DNA of 64,000 nt from IMG/VR virus record IMGVR_UViG_3300046660_000488, positions 124,001 to 188,000 of that record; one strand, 5' to 3'. Numbering within the stretch: the first letter of the stretch is position 1; the number at the start of each line of letters is the position of its first letter. Both the position numbers and the translations under genes were made by a program. The notes beneath the pieces were generated by a model. It was not told the origin of the DNA. It saw only the letters and a program-made list of their open reading frames with translations, and did no database searches. Below are positions 7,934 through 53,354 of the stretch, one piece after another.

Positions 7934-7963
7934 TTGACGGGATGCTCCTGTCAAACGTATAAA
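7934..7963 (+). promoter_or_regulatory. Sigma70 promoter for the tRNA region, with a TAAATA late promoter just upstream at 7924-7929
   Basis: TTGACG-N18-TATAAA. Confidence 0.7.
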
Positions 7964-8216: not shown

Positions 8217-8292
8217 GCGGGTGTAGCTCAATGGCTAGAGCGCTACCTTGCCGAGGTAGAGGTTGTGGGTTCGAGTCCCATCACCCGCTCCA
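8217..8292 (+). tRNA. tRNA-Gly(GCC)
   Basis: Acceptor GCGGGTG/CACCCGC, anticodon loop TTGCCGA, TTCGAG T-loop, U73, encoded CCA. Confidence 0.95.
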
Positions 8293-8325
8293 GATGTCTT
8301 AGGAACCAGTCTCCGCTACTTCCAC

Positions 8326-8400
8326 GGAGCATTCCTCTATCGGCTAAGAGACCCGGTTTTCACCCGGACAAGAGGGGTTCGATTCCCCTATGCTCTACCA
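8326..8400 (+). tRNA. tRNA-Glu(TTC)
   Basis: Acceptor GGAGCAT/ATGCTCT, loop TTTTCAC, TTCGAT T-loop, encoded CCA. Confidence 0.9.
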
Positions 8401-8402
8401 AT

Positions 8403-8477
8403 GTCTCGTTCGTATATCGGTTAGTATGCTGGACTTTCACTCCAGAGGGACGGGTTCGACTCCCGTACGAGACACCA
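8403..8477 (+). tRNA. tRNA-Glu(TTC)
   Basis: Acceptor GTCTCGT/ACGAGAC, loop CTTTCAC, encoded CCA. Confidence 0.93.
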
Positions 8478-8497
8478 AATAAAGTAAAGAAAGGTAG

Positions 8498-8528
8498 TTG
8501 ACACAGATTTCGAAGTAGAGTTTAAGAG
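8498..8528 (+). promoter_or_regulatory. Internal sigma70-type promoter in the tRNA cluster
   Basis: TTGACA, then 17-19 nt, then TTTAAG/TAAGAG in an A-rich spacer. Confidence 0.45.
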
Positions 8529-8551
8529 TAACCGAAGTATTCGACTTGCAC

Positions 8552-8626
8552 GGACCATTAGTCTATGGGTTAAGACGTTGCGTTCTCAGCGCGAAGTAAC
8601 GGGTTCGAGTCCCGTATGGTCTGCCA
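8552..8626 (+). tRNA. tRNA-Glu(CTC)
   Basis: Acceptor GGACCAT/ATGGTCT, loop TTCTCAG, encoded CCA. Confidence 0.9.
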
Positions 8627-8663
8627 AGTCTTGTATTTCACAGTATAGATGTTTCGTTGTGTT

Positions 8664-8738
8664 GGTTCTGTAGCTCAGTGGGAGAGCGTCCGGTTGTCAG
8701 CCGGAAGGTCGCGGGTTCGAAACCCGTCAGGACCGCCA
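8664..8738 (+). tRNA. tRNA-Asp(GTC)
   Basis: Acceptor GGTTCTG/CAGGACC, loop TTGTCAG, G73, encoded CCA. Confidence 0.95.
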
Positions 8739-8753
8739 TCACCAAACATCTAT

Positions 8754-8828
8754 GCGGCTGTAGCTCAGGGGTAGAGTACTGCACTGTCGATGCAGTTGTC
8801 GCGGGTTCAAATCCCGTCAGTCGCGCCA
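8754..8828 (+). tRNA. tRNA-Asp(GTC)
   Basis: Acceptor GCGGCTG/CAGTCGC, loop CTGTCGA, G73, encoded CCA. Confidence 0.93.
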
Positions 8829-8833
8829 TTTCC

Positions 8834-8854
8834 GGACCTGCTAAATACAGGTTC
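8834..8854 (+). promoter_or_regulatory. TAAATA late promoter in the loop of a hairpin between tRNA-Asp and tRNA-Gly
   Basis: GGACCTG-c-TAAATA-CAGGTTC. Confidence 0.55.
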
Positions 8855-8857
8855 AAT

Positions 8858-8932
8858 GCGGGTATAGCACAGTGGTAGTGCGTCAGCTTGCCAAGCTGAA
8901 GGTCGTCGGTTCGAACCCGACTACCCGCTCCA
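8858..8932 (+). tRNA. tRNA-Gly(GCC)
   Basis: Acceptor GCGGGTA/TACCCGC, loop TTGCCAA, U73, encoded CCA. Confidence 0.95.
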
Positions 8933-8950
8933 GTTTTCGCACTTCAGTGC

Positions 8951-9024
8951 GCGGGTATAGCATAGTGGTAATGCAGCAGCCTTCCAAGCTGAGTAGCGGG
9001 GTTCGATTCCCCGTACCCGCTCCA
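8951..9024 (+). tRNA. tRNA-Gly(TCC)
   Basis: Acceptor GCGGGTA/TACCCGC, loop CTTCCAA, U73, encoded CCA. Confidence 0.95.
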
Positions 9025-48526: not shown

Positions 48527-49075
48527 ATGTCCACGTTCTACTGCGTTCGCAACACCCAGACTGGCGCCTACCTGATCCACTCCATCGGCTATACGACGCG
48601 GTGGGCCAAGGCTGGGCACGTCCATGGCTACACGACCGCCCTCGAAGCGGCCAAGATGCAGCGGGCCTACAACTGGGCGCGCCGCAACGTCGCCAACGAG
48701 AAACCGATCTACGGTGACAGCGAACTGGTCGTGCTCAACGCCGACGAGGCAGAAGATCATCAGGCCAAACGTCTGGCGGACATGCTCACCAAGATGATCG
48801 ACGGGGTCGCCTACGATCTGGTCAACGAAATCCTGATGAAGGGCAACCCGAAAGAGGTTCGCTACGTCCTGTCATTCGAGACCGATGAAGAGCCTGACCT
48901 GAAGAATGTCGGCGGCGTCAAGATCATCACCAAGAAAACCGACATGCCCAAATACAGCACGAAGAAATTCGCGCTTGGCGTCGCCTCCGAAAAAGACATG
49001 GTCTACCTGCGATTGAGTTTCGACGGTCTGGTTGGCGCGTGGGACATCATCGAATTCAAGAAAGTATCGTCATGA
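48527..49075 (+). CDS. Hypothetical protein of a paralogous family
   Basis: FYCVRNTQTGAY N-terminus; SEKDMVYLRL C-terminus. Confidence 0.6.
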   Translation: MSTFYCVRNTQTGAYLIHSIGYTTRWAKAGHVHGYTTALEAAKMQRAYNWARRNVANEKPIYGDSELVVLNADEAEDHQAKRLADMLTKMIDGVAYDLVNEILMKGNPKEVRYVLSFETDEEPDLKNVGGVKIITKKTDMPKYSTKKFALGVASEKDMVYLRLSFDGLVGAWDIIEFKKVSS

Positions 49076-50046
49076 GCAAACACGTCATCGTCACCGGCGG
49101 AGCCGGATACATCGGCTCTCACGTGTGTCTGAAGTTGAAGGAAGCCGGGTACAAACCGGTCGCGTTCGACAACCTGTACAACGGCCAAAAATCGGCGGTG
49201 AAATGGGGACCGTTCCGCGACGGCGACGTGCGAAATTACGAGTCGATCAAGTCGGCCATCAGCAAGTATGAGCCCGTGGCGGTAGTGCACATGGCTGGCC
49301 GGATCGAGGTTGGCGACTCCGTCCGTAACCCGGCCAATTACTACCACACCAACGTCGGTGGGACGGCCAACGTTCTGAAAGCCTGCGTGATGAACAACGT
49401 CCCGATGGTGTTTTCTTCCACCTGCGCGACATTCGGCTTCCCTATGGCCGTCCTCGACGAGACCCATCGCCAGCAGCCGCTGAACCCGTACGGCGACAGC
49501 AAGATGCTGGCCGAGCGGATGATGCTGGGGACCATGGAGAACAGCAAATGGCAGGGTATCATTCTGCGCTATTTCAACGCTGCTGGCGCCGATCCTGAAG
49601 GCCGCATCGGCGAAGACCACACGCCGGAGACGCACCTGATCCCGCTGCTCCTGCAAGCGGCCATCGACGGCACCCCGTTCGATGTCTACGGCACGAATTG
49701 GCGAACCGACGACGGAACCTGCGTGCGCGATTACGTCCACGTGATGGACCTCGCAGACGCCCACGTCGCGGCCGTGAAAAAGCTGGAAGGCGCGACTGAC
49801 GTGCTGGAGTTCGTCGATTACAATCTCGGCACGGGCAAAGGCTATTCAGTGTTCGAGGTGATCGCCACCGTCGAGCGGATCACCGGCAAGGAAATCAACT
49901 GGGTGGCGGCCGACCGGCGGCCGGGCGACGCCGATGCTCTGGTCGCCGATCCGTCGCGCGCGCGGCGCGGGCTCCACTGGGAAGCACAGTACGACCTCGA
50001 CGATATGGTCAAGCATGCCTATGCGTGGTTGACAAGCAAGTCGTAA
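49072..50046 (+). CDS. galE: UDP-glucose 4-epimerase
   Basis: VTGGAGYIGSH, NPYGDSK (YxxxK), LRYFNAAGA, RDYVHV.DLA.AH, RRPGD. Confidence 0.95.
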   Translation: MSKHVIVTGGAGYIGSHVCLKLKEAGYKPVAFDNLYNGQKSAVKWGPFRDGDVRNYESIKSAISKYEPVAVVHMAGRIEVGDSVRNPANYYHTNVGGTANVLKACVMNNVPMVFSSTCATFGFPMAVLDETHRQQPLNPYGDSKMLAERMMLGTMENSKWQGIILRYFNAAGADPEGRIGEDHTPETHLIPLLLQAAIDGTPFDVYGTNWRTDDGTCVRDYVHVMDLADAHVAAVKKLEGATDVLEFVDYNLGTGKGYSVFEVIATVERITGKEINWVAADRRPGDADALVADPSRARRGLHWEAQYDLDDMVKHAYAWLTSKS

Positions 50047-50057
50047 ACCAGTATAGA
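50029..50057 (+). promoter_or_regulatory. Sigma70 promoter within the 3' end of galE driving the ncRNA
   Basis: (TGG)TTGACA-N17-TATAGA. Confidence 0.75.
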
Positions 50058-50063
50058 CGCAAT

Positions 50064-50344
50064 TGGAATGTGACGTGGCATGGCACCCGCAAGGGGATCG
50101 CGACAGTCTTGGGGTTCAAGTCCCCTTCACGTCATGGGGCGACGGTCCCAGCATTTCAGCAAGGCCGGTCGGTTTGGATGATCGCAAAGTCCGGGCCGCC
50201 CGTGGACTCCCTTGTTGGTACGAAACAGGTGCGCTTGGCAGTGCATCGTTGATCAGGACAGCCATCCTGACATAGCGCGTACGAGCTTGGATCAGTTATG
50301 CGGGCACAGGCAGTGTAGGTGGCCGCTCTCTTCGGAGGGCGGCC
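50064..50344 (+). ncRNA. Candidate ncRNA of about 280 nt with a 5' tRNA-like domain
   Basis: Own promoter; acceptor-like stem 50072-78/50127-33; T-arm GGGG-TTCAAGT-CCCC; further hairpins; terminal 10-bp cUUCGg hairpin; no credible ORF. Confidence 0.65.
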
Positions 50345-50353
50345 ATCATCGTT

Positions 50354-50668
50354 TTAGAACAGGATCACCGGGACCGTGGCGATCCCCAGTTCCTTGGCCG
50401 CGTTCGCGCGGTGGCGACCATCTTCCTTGCCATTGGCGTAGATGATCAGCGGATCGAGCGTCCGCCCGCTCTGGATGTGGTTCTTCAGGTCGTCGATATT
50501 GTCGCGCGAGACGTCGTCGATTTCGAGCGGCCGAACCTTGCTGAGGTATTCGTCCGGGGTCATGGACACCATCCTCCCACCGTTCTGCTGATAGTTGGCC
50601 TCGCCGTACCACTCATCGCGAGGGGCCAGCGGATAGGAACGGGCTTCGGTCAATTCGTGAAAGCGCAT
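50354..50668 (-). CDS. Late ParB/Srx-like small protein, putative internal head protein
   Basis: TAAATA (50678-73)-N4-ATG; MRFHELTE leader; DPLII...EDGRHRA..A..LG...VPV. Confidence 0.7.
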   Translation of the reverse strand: MRFHELTEARSYPLAPRDEWYGEANYQQNGGRMVSMTPDEYLSKVRPLEIDDVSRDNIDDLKNHIQSGRTLDPLIIYANGKEDGRHRANAAKELGIATVPVILF

Positions 50669-50712
50669 GCGGTATTTATTGACGCCGATTGACTGGTAAA
50701 CTAAATTAACGT

Positions 50713-50871
50713 ATGGAAACTGCTCGGATCGATTGGAAGTGGGCGCGGCGAGAATTCGTCAACACGCTCCGTCTCTATTTTCTTCCGGTCACGTTCCTGT
50801 GGACCTTGATCACCAAGGGCCGCGAACCGGCCGTGGCACATGTCACGGCTATCCTTGAATCAAACCTCTAA
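50713..50871 (+). CDS. 52-aa small protein absent from the ORF track
   Basis: TTGACG-N17-TAAATT-N5-ATG; METARIDWKWARREFVNTLRLYFLPVTFLW. Confidence 0.55.
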   Translation: METARIDWKWARREFVNTLRLYFLPVTFLWTLITKGREPAVAHVTAILESNL

Positions 50872-50901
50872 TTATACGGGTGTAAAGCAAATGTTGGACG
50901 T

Positions 50902-52425
50902 ACGCAGCTAACGAAGACCTTCGACCATCGCTCCGAAGAGTCTTCCATCTATAACACATGGGAACAGGAAGGAGCTTTCGCGCCACGCGGAAATGGTCCT
51001 GCCTACTTCCTTCCGATGCCACCGCCGAACATCACCGGCATCCTGCACATGGGTCACGCCCTCTTCGCGACATTGCAGGACATTTCGACCCGATACCACC
51101 GGATGGCAGGCGATTGCACGCTCTGGCTCCCCGGCACGGATCACGCGGGTCTGGCGACGAACACCAAGATCACGGCGCTTATGCTGGAAGACGGGCTGAA
51201 CCCCGACGATCCGGAAGAATTCGACCTGTTCGCCGACATCTACAAGAAGAGCCTCCGCAACACGATCAGCGGCCAACTCCGTTCCTGCGGCGCCAGCGCC
51301 GACTGGAGCCGTGAGACGTTCACGCTGGACGAAGGGTACTCCCGCGCCGTTCTGACGGCCATGGAGCGCTGTGAGGCCGCTGGAATGCTCTATGGGCAGG
51401 ATGGGCAGTGGTGGCTCAACATGAAGCCTCTGGCTGACCGTCTGCTGGCCGAACTCGATGAAGGAAACATCGAGATCATCCCGGCCGGGCAGGAAGGCAC
51501 GCTCCGCAACTTCATCGAGAAAATCGAGCCGTGGTGCATCAGCCGCCAGATCAGGTGGGGCCACAAGCTCCCGATCTGGATCAGGGGCAATGCGCGCATG
51601 ATCTCGGCGGAATCGCCGGGCGGCGGCTGGAAGCAGGAAGACGGTTGCCTCGACACGTGGTTCTCGTCGGCCCTCTGGCCGTTCGCCACGCTGGGCTGGC
51701 CGGACGACACCGAGGACATGCGTCGGTTCTATCCGGCCGCGATGATCGAGACGGCTGACGACATCCTGTTCTTCTGGTGTGCTCGCATGCTGATGATGGG
51801 CCTTCTGCTCACCGATCAATTGCCGTTCAAGACGATCTTCCTGCACGGGCTGATCCGCGACAAGCACGGCAAGAAGATGAGCAAATCGGAAGGCAATGGC
51901 ATCGACCCGCTGGAGATCATCGACCGCTACGGCTGCGACAGCATGCGCTTTGCGCTGGCTGAATCCGCCACGCCCGGTCAGGACATGCGGATGTGGGACG
52001 ACAAATTCCAAGCCGGAAAGGCCCTGCGGACGAAGCTGTGGAACGCGGCGCGCTATGCGCTGAGCCACTACGACCGCATGGGACGGCCAGAGATCGAAGC
52101 TCTGGCCAACCTCAACCGCATGGACGACTTCCATTTCGTCAAGCGGACGCAGGAAGCCTCTGAGACCATCCAGATGGCCTACCGCGACCTTCGATACCAT
52201 GAGGCTGCACACGAGCTTCGTCGATACATTTTCGACGATCTGTGCGGCACGTTCATCGAAGCCACGAAGAGCCGTCTCTACGACGACAACGATCCGAAGG
52301 CCCTCAACACCTTGATGTGGGCTCTGGACATGACTTGCCGGATGGCTCACCCGATCATGCCGTTCGTCACCGAACGCATCCGGGCGACGTTCTCCGACAA
52401 GCCTTTGATTACTGACACTTTCTAA
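50902..52425 (+). CDS. valS: Minimal valyl-tRNA synthetase lacking the editing domain; start codon non-canonical or frameshifted
   Basis: KTFD..E..IY..WE..G.F, PPPNITG.LHMGHA, PGTDHAGLAT, WCISRQ..WGH, DTWFSSALWP, KMSKS.GN. Confidence 0.9.
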   Translation, partial: TQLTKTFDHRSEESSIYNTWEQEGAFAPRGNGPAYFLPMPPPNITGILHMGHALFATLQDISTRYHRMAGDCTLWLPGTDHAGLATNTKITALMLEDGLNPDDPEEFDLFADIYKKSLRNTISGQLRSCGASADWSRETFTLDEGYSRAVLTAMERCEAAGMLYGQDGQWWLNMKPLADRLLAELDEGNIEIIPAGQEGTLRNFIEKIEPWCISRQIRWGHKLPIWIRGNARMISAESPGGGWKQEDGCLDTWFSSALWPFATLGWPDDTEDMRRFYPAAMIETADDILFFWCARMLMMGLLLTDQLPFKTIFLHGLIRDKHGKKMSKSEGNGIDPLEIIDRYGCDSMRFALAESATPGQDMRMWDDKFQAGKALRTKLWNAARYALSHYDRMGRPEIEALANLNRMDDFHFVKRTQEASETIQMAYRDLRYHEAAHELRRYIFDDLCGTFIEATKSRLYDDNDPKALNTLMWALDMTCRMAHPIMPFVTERIRATFSDKPLITDTF

Positions 52426-52481: not shown

Positions 52482-53354
52482 ATGACCGTATTCAACAAAG
52501 TTGCGACCGAAATATTCGGTGAGCTTCCTCCGCAAAAGATGCGTCAGGTTGCTTCAGAAATCGAGCAATACTATTTCAGCAAGTACAAAGGTCCAACTGA
52601 GGTCCCCACTCGTTTTAGGGATTTCTTGCCGTATTGCAAAATCCACGCGCAGCCGTCGTACAAGCTGGCCTCCATCAGGCCTCACCAGTATCAGAACGAC
52701 TTGGCGAATAATCTGTCAGGCGTGGCCAATGGTCACCACCATGTGCTGATCAATAGCTCGCGGCAGATGGGCACGACGACGATGCTCATGCTGTTCCAAC
52801 TGTGGTCCGCGCTTCGCACGCCGCTGTCGGACATCCATTTCGCGACGTGGAACCTGAACAGCGCCCACGAAGGCCTCGACCGCATTCGTACGGTTCTGCC
52901 GCACTTGCCGCTCACGTTCGGTGAGGTCGCCTCGATGACGAAATCGGAACTCAAGTTCACCAACGGCTCGCGAATTTCCGGCGCCGCGATAGGCTCGAAC
53001 CACATTGCCGGAAAGCGGTTCTCCACCATCGTCATCGACAACGCCTCGATGGTGGGAATTCACGCTTCTCGGAAGCAAACCCTCGACGACATTTTGCACC
53101 AAGCGGCCGTCTACAACACGCGGGTCGTCATCGCGTCTCAGCCCGGCTATGTCGGCGAGTTCTTCCACAAACTGTGGGCCGATCCGGAAACCGACATCGG
53201 CGGCAAGAGCCGGTTGCAATTTGCCAAGGTCGTCCTGAACTGGCGATCCAACCCGCTGCAAAATACGGGCTGGGCCGCAAGCCATCGGGCGAACCTGCCG
53301 ACGAGCCAGTACCGTCAGGAATTCGAGAACGAGTTCATCTACAAAACAGCTTGA
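52482..53354 (+). CDS. Degenerate large-terminase (gp17) ATPase-domain paralog
   Basis: YQ motif, SRQMGTTT, F.NGS.I, IVIDN, ASQP, YRQEFENEF; no nuclease domain. Confidence 0.75.
   Translation: MTVFNKVATEIFGELPPQKMRQVASEIEQYYFSKYKGPTEVPTRFRDFLPYCKIHAQPSYKLASIRPHQYQNDLANNLSGVANGHHHVLINSSRQMGTTTMLMLFQLWSALRTPLSDIHFATWNLNSAHEGLDRIRTVLPHLPLTFGEVASMTKSELKFTNGSRISGAAIGSNHIAGKRFSTIVIDNASMVGIHASRKQTLDDILHQAAVYNTRVVIASQPGYVGEFFHKLWADPETDIGGKSRLQFAKVVLNWRSNPLQNTGWAASHRANLPTSQYRQEFENEFIYKTA

Follow-up and report, generated by a model that had tools for sequence, protein, structure and literature searches.

A start-less valyl-tRNA synthetase gene behind a conserved overlapping leader suggests a change of reading frame in giant phages

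A shortened valyl-tRNA synthetase (ValRS) gene of a giant phage has no usable start codon of its own, and a tiny upstream reading frame with a proper start overlaps it one base out of register. This layout is shared by 34 distinct related loci with 36-83% protein identity. Based on these comparisons, we favor, with moderate confidence, a programmed -1 change of reading frame inside the leader that may sense Val-tRNA supply. The main rival, which we consider unlikely, is restart after leader termination at the codon overlapping the leader stop. All of the evidence is comparative, and no RNA run holds the locus. Searches of PMC and bioRxiv, including the 2016 recoding review, the huge-phage paper and the jumbo-phage survey, found no report of frameshifting or a leader ORF at a phage or cellular valS.

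The valS locus and its missing start codon

The DNA analyzed here (the window) is a stretch of 64,000 nucleotides, bases 124,001 to 188,000 of the 578,292-bp virus record IMGVR_UViG_3300046660_000488, which has direct terminal repeats, 59% G+C and 69 tRNA genes and comes from a rhizosphere metagenome. It encodes a T4 gp15-like tail protein, a GluRS and a CysRS in addition to the ValRS homologue. The features of the locus are given in Table 1, with positions counted from the first letter of the window.

Table 1. Features of the valS locus (window coordinates)
Position	Strand	Feature	Observations
50679..50707	+	Promoter-like site TTGACG-17-TAAATT upstream of the small ORF and the valS leader	Consensus scan only; one site found against 0.9 expected in shuffles, which is weak
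50713..50871	+	52-codon upstream ORF; its TAA (50869-50871) is the in-frame stop closing the ValRS frame on the 5' side	A similar small ORF precedes valS in locus L015; the stretch is replaced by 39 other bases in a relative from sequencing run X2; no family hit
50878..50882	+	Weak Shine-Dalgarno-like GGGTG, 8 nt before the leader ATG	Most relatives have GGAGGA here; ACGGGTGTAAAGCA is identical in four loci (the window, L017, L022, L085)
50891..50911	+	Leader ORF ATG TTG GAC GTA CGC AGC TAA (MLDVRS*)	+1 frame relative to ValRS, so that a -1 (or +2) move is needed; a homologous leader is present in all 34 distinct loci
50893..50902	+	Conserved decamer GTTGGACGTA; GTT (Val, ValRS frame) at 50893-95, GAC (proposed slipping P-site codon) at 50897-99, GTA (Val, leader frame) at 50900-02	Positions 1, 2, 6, 8 and 9 invariant in 31/31 loci; positions 4-5 GG or AA only; three loci added later fit as well
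50909..50911	+	Leader stop TAA, overlapping the ValRS-frame Leu codon CTA (50908-50910)	Stops in the 34 loci: TAA 18, TGA 10, TAG 6; overlapped codon: CTA 21, CTG 7, TTA 3, ATG 2, TTG 1
50913..50945	+	Local hairpin GAAGACCTTCG...CGAAG-A-GTCTTC	Begins 10 nt after the decamer; comparable hairpins in about half of the relatives, in different registers
50893..52425	+	ValRS-frame coding region, 510 codons plus stop; class I valyl-tRNA synthetase without the CP1 editing domain and the C-terminal coiled coil	Pfam tRNA-synt_1 5.9e-92 and Anticodon_1 3e-18; NCBIfam valS 533 bits, below the 704-bit equivalog cut-off; 1GAX alignment: query 6 to about 165 matches chain 3 to about 165, query about 165-501 matches chain about 350-695
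51016..51018	+	First in-frame ATG (MPPPN...), the start chosen by gene callers	Would remove 41 conserved residues and cut the strand that leads into the HIGH motif
51046..51057	+	HIGH signature (HMGH)	
51874..51888	+	KMSKS signature	

The initial annotation had stated that the ValRS homology extends upstream of the first in-frame ATG without an ATG, GTG, TTG or CTG, that only ACG (50902, 50911) is available there, and that a 6-codon ORF opening at 50891 would enter the ValRS frame by a -1 shift. This observation was confirmed, and every coordinate holds. The ValRS frame is open from 50872, and with genetic code table 11 none of the four start codons occurs from 50872 to 51015. One codon had been omitted: an in-frame ATC (a minor table-11 start) lies at 50947, inside the conserved 'SIY', and is not kept as ATH in relatives. 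The homologous segment LTKTFDH starts at 50908, 36 codons before 51016, and aligns with residues 3-9 of Thermus thermophilus ValRS (1GAX). A 48-codon stretch without the four start codons is not rare on its own (roughly 4% by our estimate), and it is the conservation described below that makes it more than chance.

The enzyme is identified as a ValRS by its HIGH and KMSKS signatures, by the valS models as top NCBIfam hits, and by 1GAX as the top solved structure (5e-107). The CP1 editing domain is missing, as 1GAX residues about 190-340 have no counterpart and the profile match jumps from about 165 to about 350. The Anticodon_1 domain is present, whereas the region after 1GAX residue 695, including the coiled coil, is absent.

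An indel error in sequencing or assembly, one of the four options offered by the initial annotation, was examined in assembled contigs and relatives and is rejected. A contig from the source sample at depth 175 shows no difference across 50300-51702, and no inserted or deleted letters are reported between 50694 and 51463 in any of the four runs. Two further low-depth related contigs, from the same and another run, cover the site without gaps, and there is no homopolymer at the site. The same frame break occurs in 33 other loci from independent studies, including a finished genome of a cultured phage. Nothing beyond the frame break itself speaks for an error.

A layout shared among related phages

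A word search found more than 100 clusters of short ValRS (about 410-580 aa), mostly on contigs of 0.2-1.3 Mb. Of 112 cluster representatives, 82 were called from an internal Met, twelve were called from a GTG giving M/V-G-R/S, and only a handful of distant ones have a plain in-frame ATG. We read 34 distinct loci at the DNA level (labeled L with a number), from IMG/VR, JGI metagenomes, Logan, NCBI and GenBank, and all carry the same overlapping leader. Two of these are tied to cultured material. Stenotrophomonas phage RAS14 (OP752703.1) is a finished genome of a cultured jumbo phage; its relative CM1 gives the same protein match. A 581,572-bp contig in the assembly of Sphingomonas sp. 3-13AW was the only short-type hit among 185,579 species genomes. 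Cellular full-length ValRS (about 40% identity; Anaerolineae, Saccharibacteria, Halobacteroidaceae) have ordinary starts.

The shared anatomy consists of a Shine-Dalgarno (SD) site, GGAGGA in most loci and GGGTG in the window's subclade, followed 4-9 nt further on by an ATG, then 0 or 2 codons, the decamer G-T-[TGC]-(GG/AA)-A-[CA]-G-T-[ACT], and finally 0-6 codons and a stop. ValRS is always in the -1 frame. In 26 of 34 loci, there is no ATG, GTG or TTG in the ValRS frame within the conserved N-terminal region. The decamer is the most conserved element of the 5' region, more so than the F-D-H codons downstream. The leader frame reads [L/W/S]-[D/E/N]-V and the ValRS frame reads V-[G/K]-[R/S], so that each frame holds an invariant Val codon and the two are 7 nt apart. 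The whole block of 28-30 nt from SD to decamer is nearly invariant within each of three versions, even between AT-rich and GC-rich phages, so the constraint is on the RNA and not only on coding.

A leader-frame stop can only overlap xTR codons, and part of the overlap pattern is thus forced. However, the leader stop is always made at the first ValRS-frame xTR codon that is followed by a base completing a stop, and the rare CTA, rather than CTC or CTT, is used in 21 loci. This argues for selection for early termination of unshifted ribosomes.

These comparisons bear on starts within the ValRS frame. The ACG start proposed by the initial annotation is not supported, as the codon at 50911 is ACA, ACC, ACT, AGC, GAC or GGC in relatives and the codon at 50902 is AAG, AAT, CAG or CGC. 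Direct initiation at the first decamer codon (GTT 50893), with the leader acting only as a competing or regulatory upstream ORF, finds some support. Five loci have GTG there, and gene callers use it; in the short-leader class this codon lies 9-11 nt from the SD; and the GT[TGC] codon varies only at its third base. Nevertheless, 29 of 34 loci have GTT or GTC, which are not known start codons, and in the long-leader class the codon lies 12-15 nt from the SD behind a perfect ATG at the proper spacing. We regard direct non-canonical initiation as very unlikely.

A true start at ATG 51016, or a decaying gene with an upstream remnant, is more improbable still. It rests on 51016 being the first canonical start and on the internal Met starts chosen by gene callers. 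Against this, the 36-41 codons upstream are conserved at the protein level across the family and match the ValRS N-terminus in 1GAX, the frame stays open in every locus, and the rest of the gene is intact in more than 100 clusters. Many of the called starts (MGHA...) would even remove the residues just before HIGH and its first His.

A proposed frame change inside the leader versus restart at its stop

The interpretation given in the initial annotation was partly supported. Of its four options, programmed frameshifting and reinitiation remain viable, and frameshifting is favored. Its suggestion that the arrangement limits an error-prone enzyme remains conjecture, although the underlying fact, the missing CP1 editing domain, is confirmed.

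In the favored model, ribosomes would start at the leader ATG, which carries the SD site, and would have to move to the -1 frame inside the decamer before the leader stop. The shifted ribosomes would make a ValRS with a short leader-derived N-terminus, while those that do not shift would end after six codons. A -1 change of frame inside the leader fits all 34 loci, and three observations place it at the decamer. First, the spacing from ATG to decamer is fixed at 0 or 2 codons while that from decamer to stop varies from 0 to 6 codons, which points to the decamer, not the stop, as the active site. Second, the base before the D/E/N codon always matches that codon's first base (G-GAC, G-GAA or A-AAC; 34/34), and a P-site tRNA could therefore re-pair at -1. 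Third, the next leader-frame codon is always Val, and a hairpin begins 6-10 nt after the decamer in the window and in about half of the relatives.

The absence of an indel, the conserved layout, the lack of canonical starts and the codon patterns are shown by this analysis, whereas the slip itself, the trans-frame protein and any response to Val-tRNA are inferred from sequence. The most likely step is that peptidyl-tRNA(Asp) sits on GAC with the Val codon GUA waiting in the A site and slips back one base onto GGA. The A site would then read CGU, and translation would continue with ACG CAG CUA ACG AAG... (R-T-Q-L-T-K-T-F-D-H). As the waiting codon is a Val codon in every relative, the yield would rise when charged tRNA(Val) is scarce, in a sense-codon analogue of RF2 autoregulation. 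Frameshifting at 'hungry' codons and laboratory retrograde realignment have both been described (PMC5009743).

Several features do not sit easily with this model. There is no canonical X_XXY_YYZ heptamer, the sequence being G_TTG_GAC in the window or G_TTA_AAC in relatives, of which only the A-AAC / G-GAx part fits. Re-pairing from GAC to GGA needs a G:U pair in the middle position and a wobble mismatch. The conservation of the block from SD to decamer goes beyond what any model needs, and the one-base slip does not explain the invariant G1 and T2 of the decamer. A variant that we cannot exclude is that peptidyl-tRNA(Val) on GUA re-pairs 7 nt upstream on the second invariant Val codon (GUU, GUG or GUC). 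This would explain G1 and T2 but would leave the GG/AA pattern unexplained. The observed codon pairs are all readable by a single tRNA(Val), as GTG occurs only with GTA and GTC downstream occurs only with GTT, although the numbers are too small to test this.

In the rival model of termination-reinitiation, ribosomes would terminate at TAA 50909 and restart, without leaving the mRNA, at the overlapping CTA, giving a ValRS that begins at L/M-T-K-T-F-D-H. The ValRS frame has no SD site of its own, the leader stop always overlaps an NTR codon, and in the window that codon aligns with Leu3 of T. thermophilus ValRS, within a few residues of a natural ValRS N-terminus. In RAS14 and L109 the codon is ATG (GT-ATGA-C), the classic coupling arrangement, and GenBank annotates the RAS14 ATG as the start. 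Restart fits RAS14 and L109, L108 (TTG) and perhaps the seven CTG loci. However, the codon is CTA or TTA in 24 of 34 loci, including the window, and these pair with the initiator anticodon only at the middle base. The phage's one initiator-like tRNA has anticodon CAU, and its Leu-anticodon tRNAs show no initiator hallmarks. ATG is rare (2/34) although it would be the best restart codon, and restart does not explain the invariant decamer or its Val codon.

Two further routes were considered and rejected. A forward hop from GAC to the downstream GAC/GAT would skip the conserved LTKTF, and L021 has GAA. A shift at the stop with P-site re-pairing fails because the last sense codons (AGC, AAC, ATC, GCC and others) cannot re-pair at -1.

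Comparison with described systems

The prfB (release factor 2) +1 frameshift likewise has a short 5' reading frame with a proper start, a main body in another frame, an early stop for unshifted ribosomes and a shift-site codon read by the gene's own product or pathway (UGA by RF2; here a Val codon read by Val-tRNA made by ValRS). At valS the direction is -1, the waiting codon is a sense codon rather than the stop, there is no internal SD 3 nt before the site (the SD lies 13-19 nt upstream), the shift would lie at codon 3-5 rather than codon 26, and the autoregulation is inferred. The dnaX, IS-element and phage tail-chaperone sites share the -1 direction and a context allowing first-position re-pairing. 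A canonical -1 site has a conserved stimulatory structure 5-9 nt downstream; at valS a hairpin starts 6-10 nt downstream in the window and about half of the relatives, without a consensus across the family. The described sites differ in having a true slippery heptamer, and in that the shift here would be obligatory for the only useful product rather than setting a ratio of two products. The two overlapping frames are conserved in 34 of 34 loci.

Translational coupling through overlapping stop and start codons (ATGA, TAATG) resembles the overlap of the leader stop with the first conserved ValRS codon, which is a canonical start only in RAS14, L109 and L108. As in T4 gene 60 bypassing and the retrograde realignment derived from it in the laboratory (PMC5009743), two codons for the same tRNA (Val) in different frames could serve as take-off and landing sites, and a stop follows the take-off codon directly in 4 loci. 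However, the landing site would lie 7 nt upstream rather than 50 nt downstream, the peptide is too short to act as a nascent-chain signal, no take-off stem-loop was found, and we know of no natural backward case. Cognate-codon leader peptides of amino-acid and aaRS operons (pheST, ilv attenuators) and T-box leaders also place a short leader with an invariant cognate codon before an aaRS gene. Here there is one Val codon rather than a run, no terminator/antiterminator structures are present, and the output would be a frame change rather than transcription readthrough. No relevant Rfam match, including T-box or leader families, was found at E<=1 over 50000-51300.

Recoding and leader-coupled expression are established phenomena; what is new is their apparent use at a valS gene, and the locus may hide a new mechanism. 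Tentatively, ValRS synthesis in these phages could be gated by a sense-codon sensor, in which a Val codon waits in the A site of a 4-12-codon leader and the synthetase is made only when scarce Val-tRNA(Val) lets the peptidyl-tRNA slip to -1 or re-pair 7 nt upstream. To our knowledge, this would be the first aminoacyl-tRNA synthetase autoregulated by frameshifting on its own cognate codon, and in the -7 form also the first natural backward re-pairing event. Such feedback on tRNA charging would explain how huge phages dose an editing-deficient, potentially error-prone synthetase. The site is compact (about 30 nt), deeply conserved and without the usual slippery heptamer, and, acting within the first five codons, it could reveal a frame-change mechanism not covered by current rules. 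For annotation, most members of a large phage ValRS family are wrongly annotated in public databases, the 82 truncated representatives including the RefSeq protein of the Sphingomonas contig. As RAS14 and its relative CM1 are cultured Stenotrophomonas phages, the question is accessible at the bench.

RNA structure, specificity and tRNAs

No downstream RNA structure was supported family-wide. RNAalifold on two alignments gave no pairs, and the window fold has z = -0.81. A fixed-register hairpin test was weak, with 62% of cells paired and a control slid by one column covarying as well.

The motif with this architecture was found only at valS in a pattern scan of IMG/VR. The 103 pattern hits are about the number expected by chance, and the recurrent non-valS hits lie inside longer ORFs with no Pfam match in their -1 frames. 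Within the phage genome, 7 motif hits were found against about 5 expected, and the look-alike at window position 7942 is followed by only a 54-codon low-complexity frame. A genome-wide list of long ORFs without start codons was uninformative at 59% GC. For the CysRS, GluRS and IleRS genes of the same phage, family homology starts where an ordinary start would lie. Among the tRNA genes, an odd tRNA-like gene with a 6-nt anticodon loop ('GA') does not fit the site.

The ValRS encoded by the phage lacks the CP1 editing domain and the C-terminal coiled coil. This short form is a large, almost exclusively phage-borne family, with more than 100 clusters but only one hit among 185,579 species genomes, on a 581-kb contig of a Sphingomonas isolate assembly. 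RefSeq calls the protein of this contig (locus L110) from an internal Met (MYEKWEADG...), while GenBank calls valS of phage RAS14 (locus L190) from the ATG that overlaps the leader stop. Neither record annotates the leader ORF.

Features surrounding the valS leader and tRNA genes of the phage, and two related valS loci in other records (G000:C1 positions are in the whole phage record, outside the window)
Location	Strand	Feature
window 7942-7962		Look-alike of the leader
window 8217-9024		tRNA gene array
window 49039-50046		Epimerase gene
window 50318-50347		Terminator-like hairpin
window 50713-50871		52-codon ORF
window 50893-52425		Short-form ValRS
window 52488-53354		ORF matching terminase large subunit
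G000:C1:109999-110155	-	Two adjacent tRNA genes, anticodon CUA
G000:C1:457430-457499	-	tRNA-like gene, anticodon loop of 6 nt
G000:C1:516336-516412	+	Initiator-like tRNA(CAU)
NZ_JASNVZ010000001.1 532767-535406		L110, valS locus of the Sphingomonas contig
OP752703.1		L190, valS locus of RAS14

The array in the window holds 8 tRNA genes (Gly, Glu x3, Asp x2, Gly x2), and the whole phage has 69 tRNAs covering all amino acids, with five tRNA-Val genes (CAC, GAC x3, UAC). Just upstream of this array, a sequence resembling the leader (ATG CTC CTG TCA AAC GTA TAA) was found behind two TTGAC motifs. Its -1 frame is open for only 54 low-complexity codons, suggesting that the resemblance is probably due to chance. 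The two tRNA genes with anticodon CUA are of the amber-suppressor type and were labelled 'Pyl' by ARAGORN. They hint that TAG may be read through in part of this phage's programme, and six relatives use TAG as the leader stop. The phage-encoded initiator-like tRNA(CAU) carries a C1xA72 mismatch. The tRNA-like gene has an 8-bp acceptor stem and a two-base 'anticodon' (GA). It may be a false positive, and we saw no fit to the valS leader.

The small ORF lies directly upstream of the leader, in the same frame as ValRS. A similar ORF precedes valS in L015, one of the related loci. The stretch 50717-50886 is replaced by 39 other bases in a relative from run X2. The ORF just after valS matches terminase large-subunit PHROGs (best 8.5e-11). 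As it is only 288 aa, it may be one part of a split terminase or a stand-alone ATPase module. Between the epimerase gene and the valS unit lies a strong terminator-like hairpin of 13 pairs, 9 of them G-C, followed by a T-rich tail.
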